Translations under genes and position numbers: made by a program
The notes under the pieces: generated by a model
Told to the model about the DNA's origin: nothing
The model's input: the letters and a program-made list of their open reading frames with translations, nothing else
Databases searched by the model: none
Shown here: positions 30,387 to 62,811 of the stretch, piece after piece
Position numbering within the stretch: the first letter of the stretch is position 1
Layout: each line of letters opens with the position of its first letter
Source of the DNA: Mytilus trossulus
Lineage: Eukaryota
Direction of reading: 5' to 3'
Assembly (NCBI RefSeq): GCF_036588685.1
Contig: NC_086378.1
Span: 61,566,001 to 61,630,000 of the forward strand
Length of the DNA: 64,000 bases

Positions 30387-33300
30387 TCAGTTTCTGTCAT
30401 AAGGAATCTGCTCATATTTACTGTCGGTCAGTGAATCTCTATTATGTCCTGTGTTTCCTTCATCTGCTTGCCCTGAAACAACACCATCAAAATCAGAATG
30501 TAAAACAAAGGAAATAGAAAATGTGTCTAAAAGACAACAACCCAACCAAAGAAGAAAGCATATATATATATATAATTACACACATTATAAAAGTAAAAAC
30601 TAACTCGAACAAAACATTCAAATTGACGTTTTCTTAAGACATCTTTACAATTTTGAAAGACCTACATTATAACAGGACTACTTTAGATACAACTCATCGC
30701 TGTATGTCCACCATTACAGGATATCACATCCGTACCCGTATAATTTGAATGTCGCATCAGAACACGTTTACTGCAATGTCTGATGCAATGCAAATGTGAT
30801 TGTTGTATGACGTCAATAGTTCAAGCATTTAAAAATCCTGGGTCAAGTGTTGCAGAATACAAAATAACATTAAGATTTACTGCCCGTTTGCATTTCAATT
30901 TGTTAAGTCATTATTTCATATCTTTTACCTCTATGTATTTCTGAACTGTAAATAAAACAGATATTCTATTCTACATGCAAATAAGATAGTTCATACTTAT
31001 ATTCGCAATGACCATTCCAACTTCTTCATAAAACTGGGTATCAATTCGTCGTCTGGATACGGTACTATACAGACTAAAATAATAGATCAAAACATGTTAA
31101 CATAAACATATTTTCAAAGACATTGAAATCTTACAGGATCAAATTCAAACAATGAGGGGATGATGATTTCAATGTAGAAGCCGTACTTAACTGGAAAATA
31201 CGGACACTTAAATAACGTTCTAAAGCATTTGAACTAACATATGTTTTTTGTTATTGTGCATACAAGTAACACTAGTTGCTAAATACTAGTTGTTATTTTG
31301 TGGATGGCTATAGTTTTATACTATTTTGCTCTTTGTCATGGTTTTTCGTTTGATTTGTGTGTTTTGATTGTCCCATTATTGTCTTCTTCCCCTTTTAAAT
31401 TGTTTTGATTTATAAGAAATTTTCAGATCTCGCGTTCAAAAACTGTGAGCATTGTTTGATACAATATTAGTTATATTTTTTTTCGGTTTTCTATCATAAC
31501 CACATTAAGAGATATTTGATTTTTCTATAATGACTTTAATTAGACTAAAAGGGAGCTGATAGAAATCATGTTCCTGTGATTGATTCAAATAGAAATATTC
31601 TAAAGTGGTTGTTTTAATATCATTTACGGTATCAGTTTTATTGCATACATTTTATAAAAGATGTGTGTTCTGAGAATTAAAATCTCTTCAGTGACGATCG
31701 CGGCCAAAAATTTGAAAATTCAATTGAAGATATACCTTCATTTAGAAGATTTGGTTATAATGCCAAATATTTGATAGTTTCTGTTAAATTTCATAATATT
31801 GTTTTGACACAGTATGATCATTACTTGATGTCTTGTTATGTCATTGAGATGGTACTGCTGACATGTACACATATCTTCTTTAACTCATATTGCTTCCAAA
31901 TACATATTTGTTTTATAAAATTATCTATAACATATAGTTACCTCTTTTTTATTTGCCAAAATTTGTCCTTTTTACCTATATATGAAATAAAATATTTTTT
32001 AAACACTTATGTACAATTCAGAGAAGTCACACATTAATATTTTGCTATGCACTACAATTTGATTACTGTTCGTAGATAAGGTAATTACATTATGAAATTA
32101 AAATAGCAATTCGATCTCTGCAAAGAGAAATAATGATAACGAATTTTCTATTTATAAAATGTATTACTAGTAACTATATTATTCAATGATCGTTTTTCAG
32201 TCTAATCAGAAACGACCCTTTCTTGATATTCTTAGAATTCCATTTGCGATTATTATGATGTTTGTAGAACAAAATTCATTTGAATAATTTTCAAAATCTT
32301 TAAAAAAAAAATTCTCATAATATTTGATATAATGATACAATGTTTTAGTTTCTATCTATGCTAAGGTTCTCTTTTTATATCCATAACATGTAATGTTGTA
32401 TTGTATATTATTTAGAATTGAGACTTTAACTATAATCAATACATTCTCGTTTCTATTTTATAAGAGTATGCATATTCTCAACATTTAGTTTTATGAAATC
32501 AATCGATAATACGACTAAGTTCTTAGTAGTTATATTCATAAAAAATAGTAGTTTAAAATAGAAATTTAAAAAGTTAAAAAAAAGCAGATAAAAACATATT
32601 ACATTTGGTCTCAAATGTAAAAAATATTAACACTGAAACATTATCCATGCTCTCAAAGCTTCGATATTATTCCTAACTGACCACTGAAACGATTTTCCTC
32701 ATCAAACTTGCAATATGTAAAAATGTCAATCTTTTGCTATTGTAAACTTTTTAAAAAGATTTAGAATTAAGACAGCAATTGTACCATGTAAGTAAAAGGT
32801 CTAAACAATGTAAAATACCAATAGCATGTGACAATCTGCAAATTATTTCGAGATATTCAGCATACAAAATGAATTGTGATCTTGTTTGTATATGAATGCC
32901 TATACAAAGTCTGGAAAATGACAGTTGTTGTCAATTCGTTTGGTGTGTTTTTATCATTTGATTTTGCAATTTGACACGGGACTTTCTGTTTTGGATGTTC
33001 TTCGGAGTTCAGTGTTTGTTATTTTTTTTATGGTACTAAATTATAAGCCTTGTATATTTCATAAATATGTTTTTACATACCCCTGGTTGCTTTGCATATT
33101 GTAATGATCAGTCCTGCTATGAAAATTCCTGTTGCTATTATCAGTGAAATTATTAACACTTTGCGGACTGTGTTATCTGATAAAAAGATAAACTATGTTG
33201 ATATTATCGAAAGATAACCAAATTTGCATTCATCGCATATCAAAAGAAAAAAATCAAAAATACTTTTAAAAGAAATCGAAAGAGATGTTCTGAAGTATAC

Positions 33301-36300
33301 ATTTATTAGTTTATTTATATTCGAACTCTTTAAAACTTATTAGAACGATTATACTTGATATGTTGAACACATTGAAATATCACTAAAAATGTGGACCGAA
33401 CAAGAATTACACCCCAAAAAGATTAAAGATACCAGTAATGTAAAACAAATCATGAGGAGTGTATGTTTACGACATAAAGATTGCACAAACTACTTATCAA
33501 CAATCAATGTAACAAATGCTACTTTATAGTTAGTTACTATATGTTTACTATATTTTTTAACATACAAGACTAAAAAAGGCCAAAGGTTAAAACTAAACTA
33601 TTACCTTTGGCCTTTTTTAGTCTTGTATGTTTATTTTTTTTAAATTTTGGTTCATTAATATGTTATGTAGTTTAGTATGACGTACATTTCACTGACTTAG
33701 CACACATGTTTACGTGTGGGTCATCTGCATTGAATACCCAATTGTGGTTATCTGCTGTTATCTTGTTTGGTCGGGTTGTTGTCTCTTTGACATATTCCCC
33801 ATTTTCATTCTTAATTTTATGATGCACAGATGAAAATAAGCCGATGTTTTTGTATGTTTTACTTAAAGAGTCACATGACAAACAGATAAACACTAACTCT
33901 CGTAAAACAAACTTTCGAAATCACCTCCCATATACTCACCATTCTCTTCAAAAGTATGGGATGTTGAGAAAAGTGCAGTTTTCACAGTCAGGCGGTATAC
34001 AGACGTATCCACATCACAACCTGGTTTCAGATGAAGTGTTGCAACCTTTGCTCTCACAGGAACTGCAATGTCATGCATATTTACATGACTAGTAGCTGCA
34101 CCGATATTTTGTCTCTGACGTTCTGATGAATGCAACAATCTTCCATTTTTATACCAAATAATTCTTGCTTTTTCATCCAAAGAATAAAATTGGACACTCA
34201 GTACACATTCTGCCTCTGAATGATCTTTTATAATAGAGCTGTTTACAATAACGGGTGGCCCTGAAACAAATAAGTTGGTTAATGCATTTAAGTTGCCAGG
34301 GTGCATAATTTCCTCAACTATTGACATCTGACACAAAACAGTAATCTTTTCAAGTTTAAGGTTCTTGTGATCTTTATAAATTAAAGACCGAAATAAGAAA
34401 AATGAAAAGAAAAAAAGACGAAAAGGTCCACTCTGGAATGTACTGTTCTTAAAAAGTTATTTCTCTTTAGAAAAAAATCAGTCATTTGTTTTAAACATAT
34501 ACTTTCTTGGTAATATATAATTTTAATGTTCAAATAATATATGTGCATACTTATGTATACTATGGAATCGTTTATTTTCGCCAGTACATATTTATTTGTG
34601 TAATGAAAATTCTTGAATATTTGATTTCAAGTATATATTTAAAAAACCTTGACTTTTACCCTAAATAATGTGTGTACTGCGTTTAACATTCAAATTTGTG
34701 GTTTTCGTAGACTTAAAAGTTATGAAAGGTACCAGTATTATAATTTAATACGCCAGACGCGCGTTTCGTCTACATAAGACTCATCCGTGACGCTCAGATC
34801 AAAATAGTTATAAAGCCGAACAACTACAAAGTTGAAGAGCACTTAGAGTTTTAGATACTGGTATTACCGTCTGATGTGCAATTTAACCGAATTTTTCAAA
34901 TTCCCGATCGTGACTTGTTCACTGAATATGAGTCCGAATGACATTTGAAGCATGTACAACAGGAGATCTACACAGTTTTGCTCTTTTTGGAGTTCATGTG
35001 ATTCCCTCATTTTTTGTTTGTTGCCTTAATTTGCCCCTTGGTAATCGATTTACCAGATTTGAACATCGGTAAACTACAAAATCCACGAATATTTGTATTT
35101 TTAGAATAATAATGAATCCACAGCATTTGCTTAATCAGAAACTCAGAAATCAGAATTTATTATGCATTTATAATAACGAATTTTAAAGAAAGGACAAAGA
35201 TGCATAAATATTAATTGGGATTTTAAGAAAATCTTCATACAAGGTTACACACTGGATATCAAAGATCTGTAACACATTTTAAGTGAAAATTGATTTAAAT
35301 CATATAATGATTATAACAATGATAAATATATGTATAATTTCAAATCAATTCAAAGATTGGCTGGATTTTAAAAAAAAACCAACATTATAGTAAATGCTGT
35401 TATCAATAGTTGCAAATAATATGTTTACTTCAATTTTTGATAACAAAGTTTAAACGTGCAGCAAGTAGCGCAACTGTAAATGTAAAATATTTAATAGTCT
35501 CTACCTTATTTTTTTTACAACAGGGGGCGTTAAATAGATTTGTAACTGCAATGACAACTTCCCAATAGTGATTAGTTTAAAAAAAACCCAACTTGGATAG
35601 AACTTATATTTGAGGGTCACTGACATATATTTTTACAATACTGTAAAGAAGAATGCAAATTATCTGAACGATTTTTCAGCTAAATTGAGAAATTCACATG
35701 TTTTACATTATCTAGCAACTTTACCTGACCATATCGGGAAATAGGTATTTAGTCGGATCTTAACACGTACTTGTGATTTAGTTAAAACCGGTTTGATATA
35801 AATATACGAAGAAATGTCGAAATGTTCAGGACTTAACTAAATCCGTATTTGGGTAGGATGGTGCAAGCATATGATTTTTATTGTGTCTTACACTTTGAGA
35901 AGCGAATAATCTTTAACTACTTTATTCAAATATTGTGTAAAAACGTAAATTTTGAGCTTTGAAAGTCAAGTGGCTCGAGCATTTTTCTGAGGAAGTTTTA
36001 AAAAATTGCAAATAAATATTTTTACAGTAGGTTAGCTTTCATTAGTCTTCACCATCTATAGATTAACAACTTTTGGTTATATTTTATAATTTAGAATCAT
36101 CATTGAAGGTGGAGGACGTTTGCGCAGTTAATTATTTATATTTATGTGCCATTTGTTTGCAAGAGTGACATTCCGTTGTATTATGTGTCAATTCGAAAAA
36201 GTTATGCGAGTATTTTCTCCCCTAAACAGGTGCATTATTTGATAATTAAGTTTACGTTTCTGATATCATTTTGAATAATTACAAAATGTATCAGTTCAAT

Positions 36301-39300
36301 ATATTTCAGTTTTTGTTATTGGTGTATCAAAAACATTGATGTACGATATATAATTTCATAAATTTGAAACGTTTAAAATGATTACATACCAATATAAAGA
36401 ACAGTTTATCATTTTTGAAAAAGACTATGAACGAAAAAAATCGAATTAATTATCTGCTCTTGATGATAGATTGATTGGCAAATGAACATGCGTTATCTAA
36501 TGGTAATCACAGAGTGGGACCGGCGAGCAATTTTTAATTGTAGCTTATGTAACGTTAAAACAATTTTTCACTATAAACGAATGTTACTTTATACAAATAT
36601 AAGGTCTTAGTTAGCTAAATCTACAAATTTATTAGATATTATGATTTTTTATTGCAATAGATTAATATTCTTCATTATCATTGACTATGTCTTTTCGAAA
36701 AAGGATAGTCTTTGATACTAGTAGATAGTTTTTTCAACTAGGCCAAATACGGGAGAAAACTATACTAATTATTTTATTTTAACTATAAAACGAATTCTGT
36801 GACTTTCCTTCATTTGTTTTCTTTTTATTTTCTTAAAATATATTATAACAGTCAATATTTTATATTCTATTTTTAAGTTAATAGCCTTATTCTTTTTATC
36901 AACCCAAAACTGATTTTCCTTGTATAATCGTTACAAATTCTGACTGTATGGCACAACCTTTTGATAAAAAAGCGCTATGACCAATATGTTCTTGACAAAT
37001 TCTTAATATTATCACGTCGATATTAACTTCATGTTTTATTTACTTGAGACCCCCTTTCCCCTCCCTATCTACCAATTTGTATATTAGAAATCTTCGATAA
37101 CCTGGCACACTAAGAAAGACGGTTGAATTAAAAACGGTTGTGTTCTTCCTTGAATCAGTAACGATGCACGAGTAATTTCCTATATCTTCATATGTACAGA
37201 ATGGTATATGAATAGAAGTCTGTTTCCCTGTTGAAACTCCATCTAATTGAGATATTTCTACATCATTATAATGGTGAAACCACTTTCCAAAGTAAAAAAC
37301 GTCTGGTAAGTTATGGTCTTCACAGGTGAGTTTTATCTCTGAATTACTTTCACACACGTTATTACTATGTGATACATTATGTCCTTTGTCTGAAAAAGGA
37401 AAGAAGGAACAAATAAAATTGTCAGATGAACAATCCAGAGCCTACTTTACAATAGAATATTTACAATTTGGGATATTCCGAATTGTGATAATTAAAATAA
37501 TGAAAAAAATCAGGAAGCTGATCGGACAAATAATCAATTGATGAAAATCAAAGCATACAACAAATTCTATAGACAAAAAATGAAAAGGATGAAAAAATTT
37601 GTCCTGCATTTTTTTTTAGTTGTAATCTCTGCCCTGCCTTTTTATTTAACACTCCATCCGGTCCTGCTTTTTTTTTTTAGTTTATCCTGACTTTTTTTAC
37701 ATAAATTGTCATCCTGCCTTTTTTTGCATGTGTCTCATCCTGCCTTTTTTTGCATGTGTCTCATCCTGCTATTTTTTTTTTACTCAAAACCCCTGTCCTG
37801 CCTATTTTTTTTTCAAATTTCATCCTAGCCCCAACCCATAAAAATCAAATGGTAGCTCCCTAAGTTATCAATTTTCAACATATTAGCAGGTATATATAAA
37901 TAACACCGAACGATCGTTCATGGGGATATATTAGAGGTGTTCTGTTTCTCTATGAGATGAAGACCATATCATAAAAGTACCAGCCATTCAATATTGTTGT
38001 TATTTTATTGTTTTTATGCACATTTTCTAGTGCAGCAACTGAACAACAATTTACCTTTATTGTTATGGTTTTACGAAATTAATTGTTAAATGTTATTTTA
38101 TTAAAATGAAACGAATGAATTTAAATATTAAAGAAGATGTTTTTTTGAATTTGACTTCCGATAAGTTAAACTTCAATAATAAATGTGGAAAACACATTTC
38201 TCGATTTCACGATAAGACCTATCAGAAAGCAAAAACCTAAGTCCTATGTAGAAAATTGGATACTTCTTTGTCAAAGTTATAATTGTTACACTCGGGTTAT
38301 TACCTGTTATACTTGGTAATTAGTAAAAACTTACATGGAACTATGTGAATCTGCAGTATCGACTCTTTATCAGATTCATTAGCACTACATCTACATTTTG
38401 TGCCATCATCCTTTATGTCGGCAACAAAACTAGCTTTAATAAAAGCAGCCTCGTTTTCAACATCCTGTCTCATACTTGTTATATTCTCACATGATAAGTC
38501 CAGATTGGTCCGTTCGGATTCGGTGATATCGTAGCATGTCATATATACCAGTTTACCATCTATGAACTGTTCATCCATTTTCATCATTGGTGACATTTTG
38601 AAAATAACCCCTACAAAAACGATTCTATTAAAAAAAGAGCGTAAAGTATTAATTAAAATAAATATGCTCAATACATTTTGCGAAAATATTAAAAGTCCAT
38701 TCGATTCTAAACGGGATGGCTATTACATGATTATATCTGCGATAATAATACGGTCAATGTCAAAATTGAACATGGTACTAGTAGTGATCAACATAAGCGT
38801 CCATGTCAATATCGTTTTGTAAAATAAAAAATGGTTGAAAAAAAAACTCCGGTATTGCCATCCTTCTTTCATTCCGTTTGTGTCATTGGTGGACTATATA
38901 CATACAGTAAAATGTGAAAACCAAGAGTTATAAGATAAACATGAACAGTATTTCCCCTTATACATTTATTCATAATTATACACGTTTCATCTAAAATACC
39001 TTGCATATCAAAGTAAAATTCTGCTGTAAATACACCATTTGATACAACCATTCCATAAATAGTGCTTGGCAGGCAATCCACAAGATGAATGTTTACTTCC
39101 TGTTTAGTGGTTGGTTTGTCTTTCCTGTCAGGAGCGTTACTATATAATATGCTTTGCAGAAATTCAATCTTTGTGTTGCTTTTCAACAATGACTTTATTT
39201 CTATTTCTGGGAAACTCTCGAACGTTGAGGTAAGCATGCACAGTGTACTGTTTACTTGTTTACTACGAATTTTCTTCAGAGAGATCGGTCCTGTTAATAA

Positions 39301-42300
39301 ATAAATGTAGATAGAATTGGATTAGATGTACAACAAATAAAAGATGTATAATGCGCTATGGTTTCAATGTGAAAAATCATTATAATGATTTGAATGATTG
39401 TCAAATGAGAAATTTGATTTTCATCAGGGAGCAACATATTGTTTCCTTTATATTCCTTAAGTTTCATGTCCTTTGTTTAAAAATTAGTCAGGTCTATTGT
39501 AAAGACCGAATTTTACAGTACTTTCTTTATTGTTTAAATAGTATGTATAAAGGTCAAATGTGGACGTACATATTTATATGTTTCAAACTTAATAAAAGTT
39601 TTCCGTTTGTAGAAAACATTTTACGTGCCTTTTACTTTTAACTCAGTCGATGCATTTGCTACCATGCTACCATGTTTCCTTTCATCAACGACGGTGCAAT
39701 AGTATGACCCTATGTCTGCGTAAGAGCTATTGCTGACTGTTAATACGGTTGTAATATTTGAGGTGATTGATCCTATAATTATCGTTTTCTCGTCTTTTCC
39801 ATTCATAAATTGCCAGTTCCCAAAGGCAAAGGGATGTTGTAAACCAGGTACATGGCATGTCAATGTTGTTGTGTTGCCAAAGATAGTTGTGTAAAAAGGT
39901 GATAACTCGAATGCTGGATCATCTTAGAAAAAGACAAGGCATGTTGTGAATCAGATAATCAATGTAAGTCATTCGCAAAATTTCTGCATTAACTATCGCT
40001 TCAGATGTTTTGTTCCATTACTGACGGATTGCAACATGCAAACAACTTCAAACGATTTTCGCTTTTTATCAGTTTATCACATGCACAATTGAACATAGCA
40101 ATTGTCTTAAATATATAAACATAATAAGGTTTTTTGGGGGTTAGGTTTGTGTTTATCGTAGCACACCTAAAATTATTCTGAAGTAAAAAAAAATGTCAAT
40201 TGCCTTTATTTTTCAAAAGGTCGATGTAGTTTGTTTTAGGAAAATATCTTCAAGTTTTATTCTACATCATAATCCATGTTGATGTTAAAGATAATTTGAT
40301 CGTGATCGTTTATAGGTTTTAAACTGCTTGAATATCAAAATTGCACAATAAAGACAGTTTATTCAATATCCATACATGTTTATTTTCACATGGAATTATT
40401 ATAACATGTATTGGTTATACTTACATTGGTTAATAACGAGTTGAATCTTAGAGGTCACATCGATGCTCATATCCTCCGATTGAGCTGTACACGTGCATTT
40501 TGTTCCATGTTTGTCTATACCAATAGTAACATTTAAATCAAGACAGGTAACATTGTCAATTTGTTGTGATACGTATTCACCATGGCACTGCAAGGATAGA
40601 TTAGTTCTAGGGCTGTCTACTTTTCCAATACAACACTTAAATTCAATATTTTCACCATCAACATATGGCCCAGGTGGTGATATGGTAGTGAAGTTGTCTG
40701 TATACATAGAAATAGAGCCACTCATAATAATGTTAATTATTGTTTAATCGATTTTATCTAGTTTATTTTTTAATTCAATATACCACGTCATGTTTGAAAT
40801 AACATTTGAAAATTCATCATCTGACTTTAAGTACAGATGATTGAACTTCATAATCATTTTTTTTTTTATCTGAACTTGAAGCTAATCAAGAAGTGGTTCA
40901 TCCAAACAATTACTGCTCGTTAATTGTGTTTATTCGATTTCCATTCGTATTTTAACATGAGTACGATCGCCCAACCCTCTTTGTAGAAGCGTCATTGCTT
41001 TAACACTCCATGACAGTTTTAAATTGTTTGTTTAAAACTACGAATTAACGTAATGCAAACATTCTATCTAATGAACAATATTTTATTAATGTCGAATACG
41101 CGCCAATATTTCATAAATAACGCAAACCTGAGTATATAACGGGATAGAATGTTGTTTCCTGCTCATAGTCATTTTGTGATTGAATAACTACACATGTACA
41201 AAGTGAATTCACCATGTGAGAGTCCATTCTCAAATAAAGGGTAGATTTAACAACTCTGTCTAAACCCATTTTCTCTGTTCCATTGTTACCATTGCAAGAA
41301 AATATCATTCTTGGAACTGGATTTCCCCCAATCGATTTACATGTAAGGTTAACCTCCTGTGTAAGGAAGAATGGACCTTCTGGTTTAATGGTGGGTTTAC
41401 TAGGAAAATCTATAAATTGATAAACTATAAAATTGAATAAACACGTATACACACAATCGTTTAAAATTCAGTATGAGGGAATATGGATGCATGATATTGA
41501 AGTTATTCTATCAAAATATTGTATATTGGATCAGAAGTTCGAAATAAACCGAAACAGCATAGAAAGTTAAGCAAAAAATTGCAATATGATAATGGACCAT
41601 AGGACCTTGCCTACTTAAACGTGTGGTCATTCCGATCGATCTGATTCAATTCAACTGTTTTTACAATAGTGTAATTCAGCAGTGACTTTCTAATTAGAAA
41701 AAAACAAATTAAATATACGCCGTTTTGATTTTCTTTGTTTTCATATTTGTTTGTTTTTGTAGTGATTAAGATAACAACACACTGTTGCATGCTGTATCCA
41801 CATTTTTGATATCTTTAACAAATATGTCTGTTCAAATATTGTTGTCAATATAATAGAGTTTTATGCGACTGCCATATAAGTGAGAAGTTTAGCTAGCCAT
41901 AAAACAAGTTATTATCCACCTTTTGATACATTCGGAAATGCACGTAGCAAGCTAGCAATATAACAGTTGTTTTTAATTCGTTTGATGTGTTTGAGCTTTG
42001 ACTTTGCCATATTAAAAGAAACTTCGCGTTTTGAATAAATTTTCAGTACGTTTTATTTTGTTCTACATCTTAAATTTATTGCGGCATATTGGGTTTGTCA
42101 TTTAAATACATAATGCTGGGTCCAGCCAACTTTTCCAGGATATACAATTGCAATATGTTACAGTTCCGTCGGATGTTCGATCCTATATTGAAAAATGTCA
42201 CGAAGCCAAAATAATGGAAAACCAAATCTTATTAAGGACACTAAAAGCTTATTTACCATTAAGGAAAACAACTAAAGAAAAATAGTTTTTCTAATTTTGT

Positions 42301-43432
42301 TTTGATAATAGCATTCCTGATAGTAACCAATATTTAAGAAGTTCATATATTGATCCTTTTTTTATGATGTTATACATTTTCTTACCTGATACTCTGATCG
42401 TGGTGGTTTTATTGATGACGTTTTCTGTAGACGACCGATATTTACAGATCATTTGTTGCTGACCAGTAACATGAACATTATGCACATTCAGTGTATACAA
42501 GCACTGATTCGAATTACATGAAAACACATATCCTGTTATTCTGTGTACAAATGTTTCATTGCATATTCCACTGAATAATTTTTCAGCATTCCCAAAAGAT
42601 AGCAGAACACTGCCAGTCTCATTGCATGGTCTAACAGAACAGATGAATGCAAGGTTACTTCCAGTATGAACTAAGGTGCCATTTTTTGGTGACAAATTTA
42701 GTTCATGCTGTTCCATGCCTAAAATAGTACAATAAGGTCATAATAAAGTAATAGAACAAATAAGTTTTATTTGCTCCAACGATAATTCATTTCTGGTATT
42801 ATTGACTTATCAATATTATAAGTGGCGTATGTGAGACTTAAACAAGACTAATAATCAACATTTTTGATTTTATACTGAAAACACTTTACTAAAAGGACAA
42901 TGATAGTATAATTTATTAACATGAGATTTGATAATGCTAATAAAGCTGTATTCCTAATACTGAATTATAGGACATATTCCCAGAGAGATTACCTTTGCTA
43001 ATTTCACGATATCGATAAATTCCTAAATATTCTTTTAGAATGATAATACTTAGAGGGGGAAAAATTGTAAAGTACATATGGTGGAGAGATTTTGTCTCCA
43101 AAAAACGCAAAATTAAAACAAAAACCACTGAAATATCTGTACTAGTTGTTGCGTTGTTAATTTTCCTCACCACAAACTTTGGGATTATGGCTATAATATA
43201 TGAAGTAAGATTCACAATTAATTATAATCGCTACGCTAATTATATGAACTAAGTGCTATCGCTATTACATATAATATCTTCAAATACTCATTTAAAACAC
43301 CTAGATTTATCAAATAACAACTGCTGACCCCGTTCACCCTGTCCACACTAAAAAGATATAAATGCACAAAACACAAGTAATTACAAACTTACCAATGATG
43401 AAGATAGCTGTTACTAGTATAATTAGCTTCAT
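30387..43432 (-). CDS. Type I membrane receptor, paralog A: signal peptide, 8 Ig-like domains, TM, ITIM-bearing tail (~896 aa, 13 exons)
   Basis: Exons 43432-43393 (MKLIILVTAIFII), 42718-42386, 41409-41128, 40697-40425, 39922-39629 (GC donor), 39290-39000, 38610-38335, 37389-37102, 34260-33940, 33176-33081 (TM VLIISLIIATGIFIAGLIITIC), 31975-31942, 31073-30997, 30472-30387. Domain exons are phase 1-1 and the total of 2691 nt is in frame. Ig signatures LTCKSIGGNP, FGNW..DIGSYYC, IIWYKNG. Confidence 0.85.
34751..34796 (-). ncRNA. Minimal type I hammerhead ribozyme motif (PLE-associated), core variant
   Basis: Minus strand GCGUCA-CGGAUGA-GUCU-UAUGU-AGAC-GAAA-CGCGCG-UC-UGGCGU. Stems I and II pair and stem III is a short palindrome. 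The core reads CGGAUGA instead of CUGAUGA. Confidence 0.7.
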
Positions 43433-43557
43433 AATCGTTTTTTTGTGTGAAAAGAAATACTTTGTCGGATCAGTTAAAGTCAGCGGTTTTGGTCTTACAT
43501 TTACATTTTCATGTGAATGTTAACATCCCGGAAATGATAGCATGTTTCAAATACCAA

Positions 43558-43655
43558 ATGAGGAAACTATGCCAGACTCAATTACATAAGGAAACGGGGT
43601 CAAACGGAACTCAACAAGCACCAATATGAATTGCTTTTATTTCCTTAATTTTATT
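43558..43655 (-). promoter_or_regulatory. Conserved upstream block of receptor A (paralogous to 62812-62880)
   Basis: GAGGAAACTA..GGTCAAACGGAACT..GCAC..ATG.ATT..TTTATTTCC.TAATT is shared by both paralogs ~130-210 bp upstream of the ATG. Confidence 0.6.
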
Positions 43656-45205: not shown

Positions 45206-45233
45206 ATTTTTTTTATCTCCAATTTTATAGCAT

Positions 45234-47879: not shown

Positions 47880-47927
47880 ACGTCACTGATGAGTGTTTTT
47901 TCTTAGACAAAAAGCTCGTCTGGCGTA
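47880..47927 (+). ncRNA. Degenerate copy of the same hammerhead motif
   Basis: ACGTCA-CTGATGA-GTGT..AGAC-AAAA-AGCTCG-TC-TGGCGT. CUGAUGA is intact but GAAA has become AAAA. Confidence 0.55.
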
Positions 47928-51500: not shown

Positions 51501-54500
51501 TAAAGTAGAAAGAAGAATAGAGATATGAAATGAGAAAAAAAGTTTCCTGAAAGAGCTTTTGAGCGAAGTTCGAACTCCAAACCTCAGTGTTGACTGGTTA
51601 GTGATAACAGTAAACAACTTAGACCACTGGGTCATGGATAATCAAGGAAGAGAAGCAAATAATACGTTGCTAATGTAGTTAAAAGTCGAAAAATTATAAT
51701 ATAAAATCTCCAATGCAGCAATCATACACTCACCTTCCTGTTCAAACGTATGAGAAGTTGAGAAATAATCTGTTTTCACAGTAAGGCGATACATAGACGT
51801 ATCGACATCACATACTGGTTTCAGTTGAAGCGTTGCAATTTTAGCTTTTACTGGAACGTCCTTGTTATGCATATTTACAATATGTGTGGTTGGTCTTACA
51901 TTTGGTCTTTGATTTTCTGATGAATGTAATAGTCTTCCATTCTTATACCAAGTAATTGTTGATATTTCATCAAAAGAATAAAATTCAACACTAAGTAAAC
52001 ATTCTGCTTTTGAATTATGCTTCACTATAGAGTTGTTAACAATAACAGGTGGACCTGAAATGAATAGATCGGTTGCTGATTTTATAAGCATTTGTCTGAT
52101 CGTCACGATACAGAACTGATTCAATAGTAAACGAATTACGTTTTAAACGGTCTTTTCGTCTAAACAATACAATAATATGTCATGTTCAGCATTTCAGTCA
52201 ATTCAGACGTATCAACTTTGGTAAATGCAATTCTATTTAGACAGTTCGACTGCAGTCAATTCGGTTCTGTTTGCAATTGGTAGCATTTCAGACAATTCAG
52301 TATACTGATGTGTACATAGGCAAATAACAGCTTCTGAAAGTTTTAACATGTTAATTGATGGAAAGCGTTATGTATGCAAAATGCTGTATTTACGACAGTA
52401 AATAAGTAAAACAAGTTGACGATGATAATCCCTCACATTTTTTGTTCAGATCAAATGACCGTTTGAGATCAAAATTGATTCAATAGTGTCGTAACGACCA
52501 ACTGTAATTTCGAAAGTATTTGTATACAACATTTAATTAAGATGCTATTGAGATTTGAAATAAAAGTTACACAGGTGTTTCACTTTAGCTGATAACAGCT
52601 TGGACTGTATTTAAATGTAAATAAACTCATCATAGATACCAGGACTAAAATTTGAATATACACCAGACGAGCGTTAATAGCATATGTATCTAAGGAAAAT
52701 GCAAAACGAAGTCCCATGTCAAATGACAAATTCAAAAGCTCCAACACATCAAACGAATAGAAAACATGTCTTAGTACAGTTATTTATTGGTGGTTTAAAC
52801 CTAGTAATCTTACAACCAGCGAAACCTTTTACTTGTATGACAGTTATATAGCGTTTAAGACATCGTTTTATCCCTGGTTTTATTTATGAATTCTCTTGAT
52901 GTCTAGATATCTTTTGGATGTTTTAGGGAAGTTGCAAAGTCGGTGTTATCAGTTTACTCACATGTTTAGTTTATTCAAATTTATAAATCAAACGTGTAGA
53001 TGTAGTTACCTGCATTTAAAATAATGTACAAGGCAAACAATATTAACAATTGTAAGTTTAAGAAACTCAATTAAACATATAAAGTCATATTCCATCTGCT
53101 CGATTTGTGTTCTTATGCCTTGCTGTTTTAATGTGTTTTTAGTTTTTATTACAATTGTAATTTTCTGAAGTGTTCATTTAGTTGATAAGTCATCTGGTAT
53201 GATGGTTTTAAACCAAGTTAAATCCACCATCTTCTACATTTGAAAATGCCTGTACAAAGTCAGGAATATGGCATTTCTTGTCCATTCGTTTTTTATGTGT
53301 TTTGTCATTTGATTTTGCAATACATTTTATCGCTAATCCCGGCTGACCCGGCCGCTTGAACTTTTGACGCAAACAACAATCACTTTTCCATTGTGGCGTC
53401 AGAAATTTTGTATTGTGACGTCAAATATTTACGGGAACCTATGTGATATCCAGCAATGGCGGACAGATAGCGATACGGTGTATGTGATAAGGGACTTTCC
53501 GATTTGTTTTCCTCTGAGTTTCAGTATTTTTGTAATTTTACTTTTTAGAAACAATTTACTATAAATTGAATACATTTATTTTGTTGAGTTAGTTTTCAAG
53601 TTTAAACTTCGACATGACCTTTTTGCACAGTTACTTTCAAAAGCGTTTATTACCATCAATTTATATATATATATTTTTTTTTTACCTGGTACACTTAGAA
53701 AAGTGGTTGAATAAAAAACCGTTGTGTTCTTTCGTATATCTGTTATGCTGCATGTATAGTTCCCTATATCTTCATATGTACAGAATGGTATATGGATAGA
53801 AGTCTGTTTCCCTGATGAAAGTCCAAATAATGGACGTATTTCAACATCATTATAGTGGTGAAACCACTTTCCAAAGTGAAAAACGTCTGATAAGTTATCG
53901 TCTTCACAGGTGAGTTTTATCTCTGAATTACTTTCACACACTTCCTTTCTATGTGATACATTATATCCTTTGTCTGAAAAGGCAAAAAGGGAGGGAACAC
54001 TGCAAACCAACTTATTTTTGCGACTACTTATTTGCGCGTTTAGCCTTTTCTAGGCCCCTTTGCTGCTCCTTAATGTCGTGTTTATTGCATTTACTGGATG
54101 TAGTTAAATCAGAAAAATGCAATTTATACATATTTGCAAAGATATTCTAGTTATTTTCTGCTCGCCTAATTCGCGAACTTAAATCGCACGCGATAATAAG
54201 TTGCTTTCCAGTACTCAAAATTAATTAAGAAAAAAAAATGTAGAAAAAGCTACGGAATTAAATCTAAAGATAAAGCTATATATTTATTACATATGTCTGT
54301 AAAATTTCATTAGTCAATTGTCTAATTCATCAAACCCAGATCTCTTTACAAATACCGATACACATATATACGAAGAATATTGATTATTGTTCTGATGATT
54401 GTTTGTGTCAAAATCTTAATTTCTTTAATCTAAATGTTGTCTTTTTGTTAAATTGAAAGTTCCAAAATGTAAGCAGAGATATACAAAGGGGACAATAAAA

Positions 54501-57500
54501 ATCAAGAAAACCACGGAATAAATGAACACCACAAAAATACAAACAGAAAGAAAAAGAAAAACATACAACTAAGACAGAGGGACGAATAAAAACTAAAACA
54601 GGGGATCAACACTTTAGATTGTTAATAGTTCATGTTCACCTAGTAAGGTCGTGTTAATCATTGCAAGGAAGGACTCAGCTGCAAGTCGCATTCAATAATG
54701 TGACAATCGAGGTCAAAAAGGACAAGATGTGGTAACAACAAGTGAAATATAACTGAGATCGTTTGTGACACTTAAATTCCATAGAGAATAAACAAAATCA
54801 TGATGACGTTCGTTTCGAAGGTTATTTCAAGTATATTATTTGAAACCATTAGTACACTAGATTCCTCATAAGTAATAACTCTCTTTCAAGAAAATCATAA
54901 AACCTCAACCCTAGAGAAGGGTATACACTGGGAGATATTTACTCAAAATGACTTCTTAGATGTAGCCGAAACATACAATTGTAAATGTTATTTATAATTT
55001 AACACATAAAACATTTTTTTAAAACTTTATTAACTTGTTGAAATGTCGAAATACCACACAGTCATTAAAACTATTACTGTCGTCAGAAATAGGTTTTTGG
55101 AAGGGCTCACTCTTTCGTTTTCAATGATGTTTTGAGTATACTGTTGTTTGTCTTTTGGTCTTGTATTCTGCCATGGTGTTTGTAGTTTATTTTCGCCTTA
55201 CAAGTTTGAAAGTCTCTTTAATAATTTTCGATTCCTCTTTTTGAACGTATTTCTTCTGTAACCTGCTTTGTCATATTTTGTTTCCATTGAATTATCTAAG
55301 AATAAAAGCAGCCAGAAATTTGAATTTAACGATATCATGGGTAAAGACATCGGAGACCAAAAGCGATATCTTCTATGAATTGGTCGATTTAAATTTCCTT
55401 CTTTTTTCCTGCATATGTTATTTATTAGGTTAAGATCATTAGAAGGTATATGCGAAGTATTCATTTTTTCTTGTATATGAAAATAAAACTTACAAGGGAA
55501 TATGTGAATTTTCAACATTGACTGGCTGTTCGATTTGTTAGAACTACATCTACATATAGTATCATCATCCTTTATGTCGGCCGTAAAAACATTTTTAATT
55601 AAAGTAGCATCGTCAATAACTTCCTGTTTTATGTAGGTTACATTGTCACATGATAAATCTAGACTACTTGCGTCTGACTGGATAATATCGTAACAAGAAA
55701 TTGATGCTTGTTCACCATCTATAAATTGTCCATCCATTTTTAACATGGGGGTTTTGTTAAACAGCTCCCCTGCAAAATTATTCATTGTATGTCAATTTTA
55801 TGACATAGATGTTCAACACACTTTGCAATGATATTAAGTTTCATTATTCAAATACATAAAAAGAATTCGTCTTATCATCATCTCCAAAAATACATTTCTA
55901 ATCAGTTGATCAGGAACCAAGCCAAAACTGAAAATTATGTTTATAAATTCTTTGCCTTTTATAATATTGTTTATTCAAGTATTACTGATAAGTCGTTTGG
56001 CCTCAAAGTGCGCGTCTCAAAAAATATTAAGCCAGACAACGATGATAAAAAAAATTATTGAACAACTTCAGCTTCCCTACAAATAGCGTTTTCTCAAAGA
56101 ACAATAAACATCCTACATCTGCAATGCTCTCATTTTTGTAAGATCTGTTTTACCATCCTTATGTTTAAAAAAAATATATCTATACAGTCATGATTTAGGA
56201 GGAAGATATACACGAACTCTTTTCCCCTAATACATTATTCCATATGCACATATATTGTGGAATTTTCATTATATACCTGTTTCATCAAAGTAAAATTTCT
56301 CTTCGATGACACCATTTGAAACAATCATTCCATTAACATTACTTGACAGGCAATCCATAAGGCTTATAACTCTTTTCTGTTTAGTTCTGAATTTCTCCAT
56401 TTCTTTCAAGACAGACCTGTTTAATGGACCCTGTTGAAATTTGACCTGTCTGTTATTTGTCCACAAAGACTCAATGCTTATGTCTTGCAAGCTTTCAAAA
56501 GTTACAGTAATCGAACACAGTGTGGCATTAACGTGTTTGGTATGAATTCTCTTCATAATAATTGGTCCTGTAATGAGACAATCTCTGTATAAAGATATAC
56601 ATAGTATATGACAAATAACAAATAAAAAGCGAGAATGTTCATCCACTTCCAAAGTCGTTATAGTACTAAATAAATTGATTGTATGATGGCTATACAAGAA
56701 CAAATACATGTATCTTATCATGTTTATATTTTTGATTTTGTCTTGTATGCATTATCAACCAAAAGATATAAATAAAATGTAAAATAATAACTTTCGAACT
56801 GCTAGGAAAATCCAAATCGGTAAGTCAATTAAATCAAATGTCAAAATCAAAAGCTCAAACACATCAAACGAATGGAAAACTACTGTAATATTTTTGACTT
56901 GGTACAGGAATTTTCTTTTCACCTGGTTTATCAGATACATAAACCTCTCACTTGTATGACAGTGACATACAATTTCTTTATATTGACAGCGACATAATGA
57001 TCCATTCATCGGTTGATTTCTAATATTTCGTAAATGAGTTTCTTTTTCAAGATTTTATTATTGTTTAGGTTTTTGTGGATTCTAATACTTGCGAGTCTTC
57101 AATGCAAGTCATGTGTTTGACTATGACATTGGAAATATTTCTGGTTTTCAGTAGAATATAACACTGAGTTCTTATAACCATTCTTGTATACTTTAATATT
57201 GTCAAATTTGGAGATACATAATATTACAAGTGTCCCTTTTAAACCTTAAAGAACAAATTATATTAATACATGCCTTGTACATATAATTCTGTCGATGCGT
57301 TTGCTATGATACTATTATTTTTCCTAACATCAACTACTGTGCAATAGTATATGCCCATTTTTTCGTAAGTGCTATTATTGACTGTTAAGAGTGTTGTTTC
57401 ATTTGATATAATTGACGATATGAGACTTTTCTCTTCTTTTCCATTCGTATATTCCCAGTGTCCAAAGGCAAAAGGGTATTGTAATACAGGTACACGACAT

Positions 57501-60500
57501 GCTAATGTTGTCGAGGTATCATAGACAACGTTGGTTATTGGGGATAACTCGAATGAAAAGTCATCTTAAAAACATAAAACATGTACGTTACAGAAACTTC
57601 AAGAAATCAAAAGAGTTTCCGCCTATGATTTCATTTCATACAGTAATTAAAATTATCACGGTTTCATATCTATTGCATTTGAAATTTCAATCAATAATCA
57701 AGATGTAAAACAACTTTGACAACTAAAGATTATTATACCTTTTTAAAAGTATGATATGCATATTTTAAGGATTGTTTGTTTAATAGAGATGCTGAAGATA
57801 CCAGAGGGAAATCCAAACTCTTTATTAGAAATGTGCCCCGAAAGAGTAAGCAGATCATGCTCCACATGTGGTACCCGACGTGGAGCGTTTATTAGTACGA
57901 ATCCAGTAATAAGTCTTACTCGGTAAGCGGTAAGAAACATTTGTGAAAAGGGCACGGATTTGTAGTTACTACATAAGGAACATAACCCTCTATCATCTGC
58001 GAAACAGATATTCCATAACGGCCAATCAACTGGTGAAGGCGTCCGTAAAATTCCCAATAGGATGATTTTAACTTCATCACTTGAAACTCTTGCTTTAGTA
58101 GCTTCTTTATGAACATCAGCCATCTATTATAGGAAATACAAGCCCAGGAATTTCGTATTGACAGGAGATATATTTTCCGTATGACGGCGCTGCTGGAATG
58201 TTACTGCATAGAAATGGAAAGTTAATAATTGGAAAGCTCAAAATTATCTCTTTTGTCATAAAGTTTTGTTTCCAACCGACCCTGGAGCTCATAGACAATT
58301 TTTATGTGTAATTCATGATATAAGGCAGACTTAATTGTATTTTTTTAATTTGAATTGCCGAATCTTTAAATTCGCATCTGGTGAGGTAGAATTGGCACCA
58401 TTTATATTAGATAAGGATTCATCTTTCTATAAAATGATTAACTCATAATACCTTCTAGTATTCACATGTGTAAATGCCTTAAAACAGATTTATATCAGTG
58501 ACTCTTTTTACAAAAAAATCGTAAAAGTAAATAAAGGCAACAGTAATTTCCCGCTTTTCGAAATTCAGCAATCGGTTGAGAAAAAAAAATATATTGGGGT
58601 TACAAACTAAAACTGAGGGAAACACATTAAATATAAGAGGAGAACAACGACATAAAAGAAACGAACTATAATATAACAATTGCCATTTTCATGACTCGGT
58701 ACAGGACATTTTAAGAAAAACAAGGTGGGTTGAACCTCCTTTTATGGCAATGTTAAATATAACATTAACATGACAAAATCACATGACAGACTAAAATCAC
58801 TCGTAAATTGTAACCATTTCATTTAATTTTTTTAATTTCAGACGTAAGATTTTTTTTGTTAAAAGAGCCAACTCTCGCAGAATAAAAAAATCATCCACTT
58901 ACAAGATTTGTGTCGATTAAAAATAAGGATCGTACTTACACATTTTCCATAGATTTCAGAATTTAATTTCTAATTTAAATAAATATCTTTACTTTAAAGG
59001 CATTGGCTATACTTACATTGGTTTATAACCAGTTGGAGCTCAGAGCTCATATCAAAACTCATATCCTTCGATTGAGTTGTACACGTGCATTTTGTTCTAT
59101 TCTGATCTATATCAATTGATACATTTAAATTTAAACAAGTAAAGTTGTCAATTTCTTGAGTAATGAGTTCTCCGTGGCACTGAAATGACAGAGTAGTGTA
59201 TGTACTGTTTTCTCTTTGAACACAACACTTGAAATCCACACTTTCTCCATCAACAAATGGACCAGGAGGTGTTATGGTTGTAAAGTTGTATGCATCATCT
59301 AACATGTCTAAATAGTAGGAGAGAAAATATATAACGTTATATATAACATATATGTAAAGACGACACTTGCGTCAAACGTACATCGTGTTAAAGCTGGTTT
59401 ATTTTGTGATTTAAGTGTCGATTCATATTTCAGCTTATATTAATTCCATTCCTTTCTTAATTAAATACAATATTCAAAAGCATAATTATATTTGTATTCC
59501 TTAAAATAAATTGTCATTTTATTTCTTAATAGCTACAAACTCAGATGGTATAGAAAAGAAATTATTTCAAAAATGAAATTTAAACAAGTGAAATGTTAGT
59601 ATGCTTCTGTCTTTTGATAATATAGCTTTTTATGGTCGATGTTTTGTCGAAACAGACTAAGATCTTTAGCCTTTACGGAATGTAAAAGTTATTGGTCATT
59701 GCATTTTGATCACCCCAAACATAAAATCGTCATTGGCTGAATTTGCATTGTTTTTAATGTTTTAACCAATCAAAATGTTTTGAAAATAGTTTCCCGTAAT
59801 GCTTCAGAGTTTAAAACACGTATTAACTCAGACGTGTTCTAGAGGTGTTATAGATCGTGCACATTGTGTTGGCACTTGTCCAAAGACCGTATACATATAT
59901 ATTGGTATCATAAAATTTGGATGTTACCTTTGATAAAAAAATCGTTCACGTTTGCAGTAGTTTTTCATAGACAAAATTGGAGATGTGGTATGATTGCCAT
60001 GTTTATTCACCAAAGTACATTTTCGTTATTTTTCAAATTGGGTTCAATGTTATGTTTTTTTCCTTGGTATATAAATAGAAAAGATACATCAAAGATACAA
60101 GGCTAATTAAACGCACAGATATTGTGAGTATTTCAAGCCAAACTTTTCGAAAGTTGTGTCAAATACGACCCTCACCATCTATGCCTGGGGTAGCAATATC
60201 TATAAACGTTAAAATATAAGTGCATATTTTTTTTTTCAAACCAAAATTGCGACTTCATGGCTGGTGATAATTTCGAGGTCGAAAAGTCATCCAGCAATTG
60301 ACTCTTTCCAGTGGTTGTAAAAGTCATCAAATTGCATATAGAAATATGATTTATGAAAACAATCCATCATTGACACTGCAATTAAAACAGCTGCACAATC
60401 ATAAATGATAAATTTACGTTTAAGTTATTGGTTTAATTATTCAGAATAAGAAGGATGTCAATATTCAAATGGAAACCCGCCGTCCGATTGAAGCTAAACG

Positions 60501-62675
60501 AAATGTATCGAGGACTATTGATATATACATGATATATAATCTAGCTCATAAGCTAACAGTCCACAAAAAGACAAACCCCCATAACCTATTGAACAAAACT
60601 AATAAGATTGAGAGTTTGTCTCTTCTTAATAATATTGGAGAAATAGTACTTACCTAAGACTCCAATGGTAGTGGATTTATTTAAAACATCTGCTGAGGCC
60701 GACAGATACGTACAAATCATTGGTCGTTTGTGATCGGTTATATCAACATCGTATACATTCAGGCTGTACAAGCACTGGACTGAATTGCATGAAAACTCAA
60801 ATCTTCTAGCTTTTATAATTGTTTCATTGCACAATCCACTGAATAATTGTTGAACAAGTCCGAACGATAACACCGCACTTCCGGTCTCATTGCATGGTAT
60901 AACAGAACACGTAAATGTCACATTTCTTCCGATCGGAACTATTGTTCCATCATTCGGTGATAAATCTAATTCAAGCTGTACCGTTCCTAAAACAACACTT
61001 TAATTTTAATAAATCTTTATAAATCTTTCATACATGTATGGTGTCTTCGCAAATAAATATTCATAAAATATTCCTAACGTTATTTTTGAAGTGATAACAA
61101 GATACTGTATAAACAAGGAAATAAAAGAGGGTATGGTGGGTGGTATTTTAAGGCACAACGAAGAGCATGACAGAAATTGTCGTTTATCGTCATTCCCTAC
61201 GCCTATATTACCCTGCTCTGTCGCTCCGTAATTCTCGTATCAAGAAATCAAAACGAGACCAGGCATAATCAGCGACGAGACCGATAATCTATACATGTTT
61301 GGTACAAATACATGCACAAATATGTTAAATAAATGGAAATAACACCAGTTATGCAGAAAGTTTTACATATATCAAATATTGACTTGTGTAAGAACTAAAA
61401 ATATTGCAAAAATTTCAACGTGTAAGATACTGCTAAATAGTACCCATGTATTCTCATAAGACAAGGATACAAAAAGAATAAAGACACCTTCAGCGACTAA
61501 AAACAAGAAGATAAGAAACTATTATCATACTTCTGCTTATAGACACTGTGAAAACTAATTTGAAGCTTTCAATAAAGTAAAACAACAACTTATCAAAATA
61601 TTTAAGGTCAGTGAGAGTAGGATAGTCATCGCCATTTTGAAAAGTTGGATTGACAATTTGCCTTTCCTACCTGGTTTTATGCAGTTCCTGGTAAGATGAC
61701 CTAATAAAAAAGATTCTGACATGTGCTGCACCTAAACTTACGAATTAGTCCTTCTGCACCTGAGACCTGATGAAAAACAGAGAGAATTGAATTTACTTCT
61801 GATCTTCAAAAAAGAGGGACGAAAGATACCTGACTCATAAATCGAAAATAAACTGACAGCGCCATGGCTAAAAGATACCAAACTCATAAATCGAAAATAA
61901 ACTGACAACGCCATGGCTAAAAATGAAAACACAAACAGACAAACAATAGTACGCACGACACAACATAGAAAACTAAAGAATAAGCAAAACGATCACAATT
62001 GATGAAACGTGCAAAAAGTACTCGTGCCTATCAAGTCGGTCTAAACAATATTTTATTTTGAATTATGCACATTACACTATAAAGAGGGTGGTAAAGGGGG
62101 TGCTTGCACGGAAAAAACGTGAAATAAGACAGAATTTCTGTCATGAACGTTGCACGAAAAAATAAAGACTTTGATGAGAACCTTTTGTGACTGAGTCACT
62201 GTCTTCATGTATGTGTAAACTCTCTGTTGTTCTAGAAAACTTCAAAATCGATAAGGAACAACATCAAGGGCCTTTCCGCTTTATCAAAAAATAAAATTGA
62301 ATCCATTTTTTCTGGACGATCCCTACCAAGGGTGAATTTTATTTAAAAATACGGAGCACGCAAAATAAGCATTTGAAAATCGCGATGCACGTTAAATTAA
62401 ATAAGCAGAACACGTGTCTTGCACGACTGAACGTCAAATAAAAAAGTAAAAACACGTTGAACGTTAAATAAAAAACGGCGATCACGTTGCACGAAAATAA
62501 CCCTTTACCACCCTCTATATAAATACACCTTAAAAAATAGGATTCAGAAACGAGCAACAAGTGTTTATATATTGTCTTCTTTTCAAGTTACTGCTAACTT
62601 ACCTGTGAGGAATAAAGCTGTCAGTATCAAATAACTCACACCAGTATCTCTGTTTGACTCACTATGTCTGATCAT
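48501..62675 (-). CDS. Type I membrane receptor, paralog B: signal peptide, 7 Ig-like domains, TM, tyrosine-motif tail (~820 aa, 12 exons)
   Basis: Exons 62675-62603, 60986-60654, 59307-59017, 57564-57274 (GC donor, not in ORF track), 56567-56277, 55769-55494, 53973-53686, 52054-51734, 50956-50861 (TM), 50076-50043, 49472-49390, 48586-48501. Total 2463 nt in frame. Eight exon lengths are identical to paralog A (333, 291, 276, 288, 321, 96, 34, 86). Confidence 0.85.
57830..58290 (-). mobile_element. Degraded fragment of a second Penelope-like (Naiad-type) RT family in an intron of receptor B
   Basis: GRLETKLYDKRDNF / SFPIINFPFLCSNIPAAPSYGKYIS / EFYGRLHQLIGRY across several frameshifts, same motifs as at 4360-4958. 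Confidence 0.75.
62083..62516. mobile_element. MITE with 16-bp TIRs in intron 1 of receptor B
   Basis: AGAGGGTGGTAAAGGG / CCCTTTACCACCCTCT in TA-rich flanks, with internal GCACG repeats. Confidence 0.7.
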
Positions 62676-62811
62676 TTTACGTTAGCAGTTTTAATCATGC
62701 ATGTACTGTTCACGTTGATATATATATATTTCTTTCCAGAAAATAATATTTACACGTAATAACAATTTTACTGATAGAGGAATCGGAATCTATTTTCAAT
62801 GTTCAATACAC

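Follow-up and report, generated by a model that had tools for sequence, protein, structure and literature searches.

What two neighbouring immunoglobulin superfamily (IgSF) genes with related but distinct cytoplasmic tails might do is the question raised by a 64,000-nucleotide stretch of Mytilus trossulus DNA (contig NC_086378.1 of assembly GCF_036588685.1, positions 61,566,001 to 61,630,000 of the forward strand), referred to here as the window, the numbering of which is used throughout. Bivalves possess hundreds of lineage-specific IgSF genes, few of which have been assigned roles. The minus strand of the window carries two intact, co-oriented tandem paralogs: gene A (30387-43432; 13 exons, 896 amino acids, eight immunoglobulin (Ig)-like domains) and gene B (48501-62675; 12 exons, 820 amino acids, seven Ig-like domains), the latter having no exon for the second domain, Ig2. 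Each protein has a signal peptide, 23 N-glycosylation sequons, a single hydrophobic transmembrane segment, and a cytoplasmic tail of 65-67 residues (67 in B) that is encoded by three small exons, cyt1 to cyt3. A first-pass annotation of the sequence had read the two genes as the inhibitory and non-inhibitory members of an invertebrate paired receptor system. The analysis described here indicates that the pair is real, uncharacterised and restricted to Mytilus, and that A and B, which stem from an ancient tandem duplication, probably encode surface receptors that signal through phosphotyrosine and have become subfunctionalised.

The two tails differ in their tyrosine motifs, and most of these differences are fixed across species. 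The tail peptides singled out by the first-pass annotation were recovered on the minus strand where it had placed them, and a pattern scan bears out its count of ITIMs (immunoreceptor tyrosine-based inhibitory motifs): the consensus [SIVL]xYxx[IVL] matches the A tail twice (SLYSTV and SKYEQI) and the B tail never. The same pattern fits 5.1% of the tyrosines in 135 IgSF proteins, and two matches among four tyrosines have p ~0.015, a value calculated post hoc. Type I membrane proteins that combine an Ig ectodomain with this pattern in the cytoplasmic tail form a class to which the product of gene A belongs and that of gene B does not. At the distal site, each of the five A-type tails reads S[KN]YEQI and each of the three B-type tails NEYEQI (within ENEYEQI). 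At the proximal site, four of the five A-types have SLYSTV and the M. californianus protein has SLNSTV, without the tyrosine; in both species with a full B tail the motif there is SLYT[GS]N, followed by YEEI, and the B-types have an additional conserved tyrosine in the motif NRY[AT]x[ST]. YEEV in all five A-type species versus YEEI in the B-types is likewise a fixed difference, although for ligands of Src-type SH2 domains this is a conservative change. The 6-nucleotide indel reported between the tails is also real, cyt2 being 77 nucleotides long in A and 83 in B. The first-pass annotation had described the B motifs as broken or lost; that A and B differ consistently holds, and the difference fits either loss of the ITIM consensus by B or its gain by A.

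What the tails share is at least as well conserved. Invariance extends furthest around FYEE[V/I], a motif that both paralogs share, as they do EYEQIP[F/Y]DR; among the A-types, about 30 contiguous residues around YEEV are invariant. YEE[V/I] and YEQI lie 26 residues apart, too far for the two to form a canonical ITAM (immunoreceptor tyrosine-based activation motif), in which the spacing is 6-12.

The divergence of the tails is old and has been maintained. Across the Ig domains shared by A and B, nonsynonymous divergence (dN) is 0.235 and synonymous divergence (dS) is 0.739, a ratio of 0.32 that is alike in every domain; the dS value and the ratio of about 0.3 point to an old duplication followed by purifying selection on both copies. 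Between orthologs the tail is more conserved than the ectodomain: 91-95% versus 75-89% amino acid identity among A-types, and 85% versus 77% between the B-types of M. trossulus and M. californianus. Between the paralogs it is not (58% for the tail versus 61% for the ectodomain), and exon by exon, cyt1 and cyt2 are 82-100% identical within each type versus 45-65% between types. Because orthologous tails are 85-95% identical whereas paralogous tails are 58% identical, the difference between them must be both old and maintained. This pattern is what would result if the tails had diverged early after the duplication and then come under constraint, and it fits functional divergence of the tails.

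One domain departs from the general trend. Ig7 is 81-88% identical in amino acid sequence between paralogs within a species versus 79-81% between the orthologs of M. trossulus and M. californianus; in nucleotides A and B are 86% identical here, with a dS of 0.31 versus 0.66-1.16 for the other exons. Such likeness suggests that Ig7 has undergone gene conversion or is very strongly constrained. In the M. californianus B ortholog, the unit formed by Ig7 and Ig8 has been tandemly duplicated.

All of these comparisons depend on the gene models, the exons of which are as follows.

43393-43432, minus strand: A exon 1, with ATG, a hydrophobic run (signal peptide) and a phase-1 GTAAGT donor; N-terminus as in the M. 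edulis homolog
42386-42718, minus strand: A Ig1, cryptic and predicted to be V-set-like, 6 Cys; no Pfam match; AlphaFold2 pLDDT 85
41128-41409, minus strand: A Ig2 (C2-set), with a weak C2-set_2 match for the exon that is above threshold in the full-length homolog; no counterpart in B
40425-40697, minus strand: A Ig3, 77% nucleotide identity with the B block; phase 1-1
39629-39922, minus strand: A Ig4, matching Pfam Ig_3, V-set and ig; frame kept only by a GC donor
39000-39290, minus strand: A Ig5, aligning with B Ig5; phase-1 donor
38335-38610, minus strand: A Ig6, a collinear block shared with B
37102-37389, minus strand: A Ig7, the best-conserved domain of the paralogs (86% nucleotide and 81% amino acid identity with B); Pfam Ig_3
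33940-34260, minus strand: A Ig8, membrane-proximal; covered by a transcript contig that splices it to the transmembrane exon
33081-33176, minus strand: A transmembrane exon, top hydrophobic 19-mer uncharged; both splices in the contig
31942-31975, minus strand: A cyt1, 34-nucleotide basic mini-exon conserved with B; both junctions in the contig
30997-31073, minus strand: A cyt2, encoding SLYSTV and RRIDTQFYEEV; from sequence and transcript
30387-30472, minus strand: A cyt3, encoding SKYEQIPYDRN and the stop; from sequence and transcript
62603-62675, minus strand: B exon 1, start and signal peptide; N-terminus as in the M. galloprovincialis B-type protein
60654-60986, minus strand: B Ig1, 72% nucleotide identity with A Ig1, and 57% amino acid identity in the search of the species' own genome
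59017-59307, minus strand: B Ig3, joined straight to Ig1; the same Ig1-Ig3 junction in the M. galloprovincialis and M. californianus B-types
57274-57564, minus strand: B Ig4, with a GC donor; from Pfam scan, frame and protein junction
56277-56567, minus strand: B Ig5, aligning with A Ig5
55494-55769, minus strand: B Ig6, collinear with the A block
53686-53973, minus strand: B Ig7, collinear with the A block; found in the genome search
51734-52054, minus strand: B Ig8, collinear with the A block; found in the genome search
50861-50956, minus strand: B transmembrane exon, hydrophobic and uncharged
50043-50076, minus strand: B cyt1, 34-nucleotide mini-exon; a like peptide in the M. californianus B-type
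49390-49472, minus strand: B cyt2, encoding SLYTGN and RRIDTQFYEEI; from sequence and genome search
48501-48586, minus strand: B cyt3, encoding NRYAIS and ENEYEQIPFDRE, then the stop; from sequence and genome search

The A and B halves of the locus align by blastn as 11 collinear blocks of 66-89% nucleotide identity separated by unalignable introns. The co-orientation and matching exon structure described by the first-pass annotation are therefore upheld, with the exception of the extra Ig2 exon of gene A; no degenerate Ig2 was found in the corresponding intron of gene B by blastn and tblastn, and Ig2 is likewise missing from the B-type protein in both M. californianus and M. galloprovincialis. 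Every Ig exon of both genes is of phase 1-1, and both models are free of stop codons throughout, with AG acceptors and GT donors except for a GC donor after Ig4. A GT donor at that position (immediately after AC) was rejected, as it breaks the frame in both genes, which the conserved GC donor mends; the intron after Ig4 thus appears to be of the GC-AG type in both paralogs, and the resulting junction of Ig4 and Ig5 agrees with the RefSeq models of M. edulis and M. californianus. The donor sequence is gcacgt in A (39623-39628, minus strand) and gcatgt in B (57268-57273, minus strand). Also rejected was a direct join of the transmembrane exon, which ends in phase 1, to the cyt2 exon that begins with SLY, which starts in phase 2: the phases clash, and the alternative frame runs into stops. 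A sensitive search of the intron revealed the 34-nucleotide mini-exon cyt1, with good splice sites conserved in A and B, which restores the frame and explains the basic stretch ending in KK before SLY. The top hydrophobic 19-mer of each transmembrane segment contains no charged residue, as had been noted previously. The 5' exon and about 400 nucleotides upstream of it also align between the two genes (43374-43803 versus 62584-63008, 62% identity over 456 nucleotides), and may represent a shared promoter or 5' untranslated region.

Transcripts support the model of gene A where it matters most. Reads of one small public run, the only run found to contain words of the A tail, were placed on positions 30300-34300, which comprise only the 3' part of gene A; the run had been guessed to be RNA, and its spliced contigs confirm that it contains RNA. 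One contig of 2640 nucleotides splices Ig8 to the transmembrane exon (33940 to 33176), the transmembrane exon to cyt1 (33081 to 31975) and cyt1 to cyt2 (31942 to 31073), and a second splices cyt2 to cyt3, with one synonymous variant at 30997, the last base of cyt2. Because all four contig junctions coincide exactly with the modelled borders, the predicted frame of the A tail is the transcribed one; the first-pass annotation had proposed mapping haemocyte RNA, and the RNA of this run validates this part of gene A; the alternative tail frame that the first-pass annotation had allowed for was not seen in the A contigs. Upstream of Ig8, about 2111 nucleotides of the longer contig fit the 2077 nucleotides of coding sequence in the eight-domain model plus a short 5' untranslated region. 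No second genomic copy of these exons (a possible retrocopy) was found in searches of the species' own genome. Two spots in the A introns (33650-33917 and 32846-32979) show a very high summed contig depth (up to about 9400) with many loose ends, suggesting that the introns contain an abundant repeat or a piece of a transposable element; a 77-nucleotide piece of the second (32895-32970) recurs with 84% identity at 53245-53321 in an intron of gene B.

Database proteins agree with the models as far as they extend. The M. trossulus RefSeq protein XP_063443248.1 (471 amino acids) is an exact suffix of model A (residues 426-896); it begins at an internal Met in Ig5, so that RefSeq covers only the 3' half of the gene. 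The M. edulis protein XP_071174012.1 (894 amino acids) is collinear with the entire model at 88% identity. Some predicted isoforms skip exons: M. californianus X2 and M. galloprovincialis VDH93348 omit the transmembrane exon, joining Ig8 to cyt1, and M. edulis CAG2228609 omits cyt1 and cyt2, joining the transmembrane exon to cyt3. Such skipping stays in frame because the exons from Ig1 to the transmembrane exon are of phase 1-1 and the lengths of cyt1 and cyt2 add up to a multiple of three; soluble or tail-shortened forms may therefore exist, although neither was seen in the A contigs, or these isoforms may be artefacts of annotation.

The ectodomains consist of divergent Ig domains. Search queries were single exons or full-length database homologs, the joined models being used only for frame checks and protein comparisons. 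Single exons gave weak Pfam Ig matches, and four exons gave none, whereas full-length homologs matched Ig_3, ig, V-set, I-set and C2-set_2 above threshold; no fibronectin type III (FN3) or other non-Ig domain was found by Pfam in any exon or full-length homolog. The AlphaFold2 model of Ig1 (predicted local distance difference test, pLDDT, 85) has its best Foldseek matches among VHH nanobodies, VNAR, TCR-V, TIGIT and Dpr IG1, with template modelling scores of 0.56-0.72, and by this model Ig1 is predicted to be a V-set-like N-terminal domain. A model of a full-length homolog, built from an alignment of six sequences, was unusable (pLDDT 27.5). The closest solved proteins in a phmmer search of the PDB are NCAM2 and contactin (best E value 1.5e-5), a similarity that in sequence terms is generic to Ig domains, and the same search gave no Siglec match. 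Language-model neighbours are CD22/Siglec-like clusters (score 0.94-0.96), an architectural resemblance that serves as a lead only; structure-based Atlas neighbours are VCAM and MCAM.

The family is small and its range narrow. The first-pass annotation had suggested a receptor family, the size of which it proposed to search for; the Ig1, Ig7, Ig8, cyt2 and cyt3 exons each occur in exactly two copies, A and B, in the 1.30-Gb genome, and the next-best genomic matches to Ig7 are at most 37% identical. An exhaustive HMMER search with Ig7 found only two named Mytilus proteins (of M. coruscus and M. edulis) and two unnamed single-exon fragments at 52-60% identity, followed by generic Ig domains; beyond Mytilus-like proteins, matches are at most 36% identical and extend over single Ig domains. 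When the transmembrane segment plus tail was searched against the database, no further protein with this tail turned up. Judged by such searches, the family consists of two genes limited to Mytilus and close relatives. Orthologs of the A-type and of the B-type were found among M. edulis, M. galloprovincialis, M. coruscus and M. californianus, the last having both an A-type ortholog (LOC127702452, 896 amino acids) and a B-type ortholog (LOC127702451, with four RefSeq isoforms of 808-1033 amino acids), the adjacency of which was inferred from their consecutive LOC numbers on one 122-Mb contig. Since M. californianus and the M. edulis complex each have A- and B-types, the split of A and B is older than the sampled Mytilus radiation. 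A literature search for Mytilus and ITIM found nothing about this gene pair.

Taken as a subfunctionalised pair, both proteins would be cell-surface receptors for recognition or adhesion that signal by phosphorylation of tail tyrosines. The conserved RRIDTQFYEE[V/I] and EYEQIP[F/Y]DR motifs have the pY-E-E/Q-[I/V] form favoured by SH2 domains of the Src-family type, which makes Src-family kinases or similar SH2 proteins the probable partners of both tails. In addition, the A lineage, with SxYxx[V/I] at one or two sites, may recruit phosphatases of the SHP or SHIP type, and conserved tyrosines particular to the B lineage stand in SLYT[GS]N and NRY[AT]x[ST]. Signalling would thus be split between A and B, in contrast to a vertebrate-style inhibitory and activating pair sharing one ligand-binding ectodomain. 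In the oyster, the interaction of CgNCAM1 with SHIP2 indicates that ITIM pathways work in bivalves (PMC11841013). Several points weigh against this interpretation: the assignment of SH2 ligands leans on vertebrate specificities; beyond the Pfam matches, Ig1 alone has fold-level support; no full-length annotated protein of gene B was found in M. trossulus, M. edulis or M. galloprovincialis; and all three motifs of A and two of B also match the YxxPhi endocytic signal.

The last point also speaks for an alternative, rather unlikely on balance, in which A and B are adhesion or scavenger molecules, their tyrosines serving as YxxPhi signals for AP-2 endocytosis or as nephrin-like docking sites for Nck and Crk in actin remodelling, and the A/B differences tuning trafficking. 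The YxxPhi pattern is matched by YSTV, YEEV and YEQI of A, and likewise by YEEI and YEQI of B; many Ig domains with a transmembrane segment and a short tail are the layout of a cell adhesion molecule; and NCAM2 and contactin, the best solved matches, and the Atlas neighbours VCAM and MCAM are compatible with such a role. However, the approximately 30 invariant residues around the A-type YEEV exceed what a four-residue motif requires, suggesting a larger docking surface, and the pair has neither FN3 domains nor one-to-one orthology to any named adhesion molecule, the best PDB match having an E value of only 1.5e-5; the first-pass annotation had named such orthology as a possibility, and none was found.

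It is improbable that A is an inhibitory receptor, acting through two ITIMs and SHP or SHIP phosphatases, and B its non-inhibitory or activating partner, acting through YEEI and Src kinases, in a self/non-self or immune paired system as the first-pass annotation had proposed. The two-to-none distribution of ITIM-consensus motifs is as that proposal would have it; so are the fixed substitutions at the distal -2 position (Ser versus Asn) and the proximal +3 position (Val versus Asn) and the conservation of the tails following their post-duplication divergence, and the likeness of the Ig7 paralogs hints at a homogenised ectodomain module, to which the CD22/Siglec-like neighbourhood adds a lead only. 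Against these stand ectodomains that are 61% identical, one whole domain apart and separated by a dS of 0.74; two long, homologous tails, neither of them truncated, beneath uncharged transmembrane segments; the replacement of the proximal ITIM tyrosine by Asn in M. californianus A; Ser, the weakest allowed residue, at the -2 position of both ITIMs; the near-equivalence of YEEV and YEEI; and the existence of two genes where an expanded cluster might be expected.

A variant of the same idea, an ancient and stably maintained two-gene antagonistic module in which A and B would bind overlapping ligands (the similarity of the membrane-proximal Ig7-Ig8 being preserved, perhaps by gene conversion) and give opposite outputs, A through SHP or SHIP and B through Src-family kinases or adaptors recruited by YEEI and the extra tyrosines, is decidedly improbable, but if true would make a receptor pair that works without an ITAM adaptor and evolved independently of the vertebrates. 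Very unlikely indeed is decay or redundancy of gene B as a duplicate copy, with a tail changing by neutral drift. The gene has no Ig2 exon, its annotation in M. edulis and M. galloprovincialis is only partial, and it yielded no RNA evidence (reads having been placed on the 3' part of gene A only), but its 820-amino-acid open reading frame is intact with good splice sites, every domain has a dN/dS of about 0.3, M. trossulus and M. californianus share 85% of the B-type tail, and the M. californianus ortholog has four RefSeq isoforms.

Subfunctionalisation of two phosphotyrosine-signalling receptors remains the favoured explanation, and the locus is useful in several respects. It supplies a complete, transcript-supported model of gene A and a coherent model of gene B, both improved over RefSeq; the combination of a fast-evolving ectodomain with slowly evolving, paralog-distinct tails is a natural experiment on how tails with tyrosine motifs diverge after gene duplication in an invertebrate; and the tails provide defined peptides for SH2-binding tests. 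By itself, the pair is no demonstration of an invertebrate counterpart to the vertebrate paired receptors.

Elsewhere in the window, a 663-amino-acid open frame running off the window start (3-1991, plus strand) contains DUF4371 and a hAT C-terminal dimerisation domain, and is predicted to encode a hAT-type transposase or a domesticated derivative of one. An uninterrupted frame of 964 amino acids (12775-15666, minus strand) has at least eight C2H2 zinc fingers (Pfam E value 3e-60), and is predicted to be a gene for a zinc-finger protein, lying upstream of the two receptor genes.

Set beside known systems, the Mytilus pair shows both likenesses and differences. Vertebrate pairs (KIR, LILR, SIRP and the paired Siglecs) have nearly identical ectodomains, and their activating members have a short tail and a charged transmembrane segment that binds DAP12 or FcRgamma. 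A and B resemble them as tandem IgSF paralogs, one with the ITIM consensus and one without, in which the difference of the tails has been maintained; the analogy drawn by the first-pass annotation is nevertheless not supported, the family having two genes only, with ectodomains 61% identical and different in domain number, long homologous tails, and no charged transmembrane segment for a partner. Nephrin has YDEV and YDQV motifs that bind Nck after phosphorylation by Src-family kinases, and the Mytilus pair is similar to nephrin, Sns and SYG-2 in having about eight Ig domains and acidic YxxV/I motifs in the tail, but lacks the membrane-proximal FN3 domain of that family, and the sequence similarity is only that of generic Ig domains. 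The arrangement of an N-terminal V-set-like domain, a string of C2-type domains, a transmembrane segment and a tail with several tyrosine motifs is that of CD22 and the Siglecs, although Ig1 is not recognised by Pfam as V-set and the sialic-acid-binding Arg is not identifiable.

The Alr genes of Hydractinia, also invoked by the first-pass annotation, form a highly polymorphic cluster of at least 41 genes encoding one to three Ig domains and an Fn3-like spacer (10.1101/2022.03.04.482883). They share with the Mytilus pair divergent Ig domains missed by Pfam, one exon per domain, isoforms that skip the transmembrane exon (predicted ones in Mytilus), and ITIMs in some tails (in Alr, also ITAMs). 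The parallel does not extend to family size or architecture, the Mytilus family having two members with seven or eight Ig domains each.

The nearest comparison is with other bivalves. The suggestion that A and B might belong to an undescribed family of molluscan receptors is correct insofar as this pair is uncharacterised, but ITIM-bearing IgSF receptors have already been described in oysters: CgNCAM1 binds the phosphatase SHIP2 and damps the expression of inflammatory genes (PMC11841013), and CgIgIT (J Immunol 2020) and CgSiglec-1 (Dev Comp Immunol 2016) are further examples as cited in that paper. There is no detectable orthology between these receptors and the Mytilus pair, which differs from them in its seven or eight Ig domains, the lack of FN3, and a tail that is unique to the pair; Mytilus A and the oyster receptors alike are type I membrane proteins of bivalves that combine several Ig domains with an [SIVL]xYxx[IVL] motif in the cytoplasmic tail.

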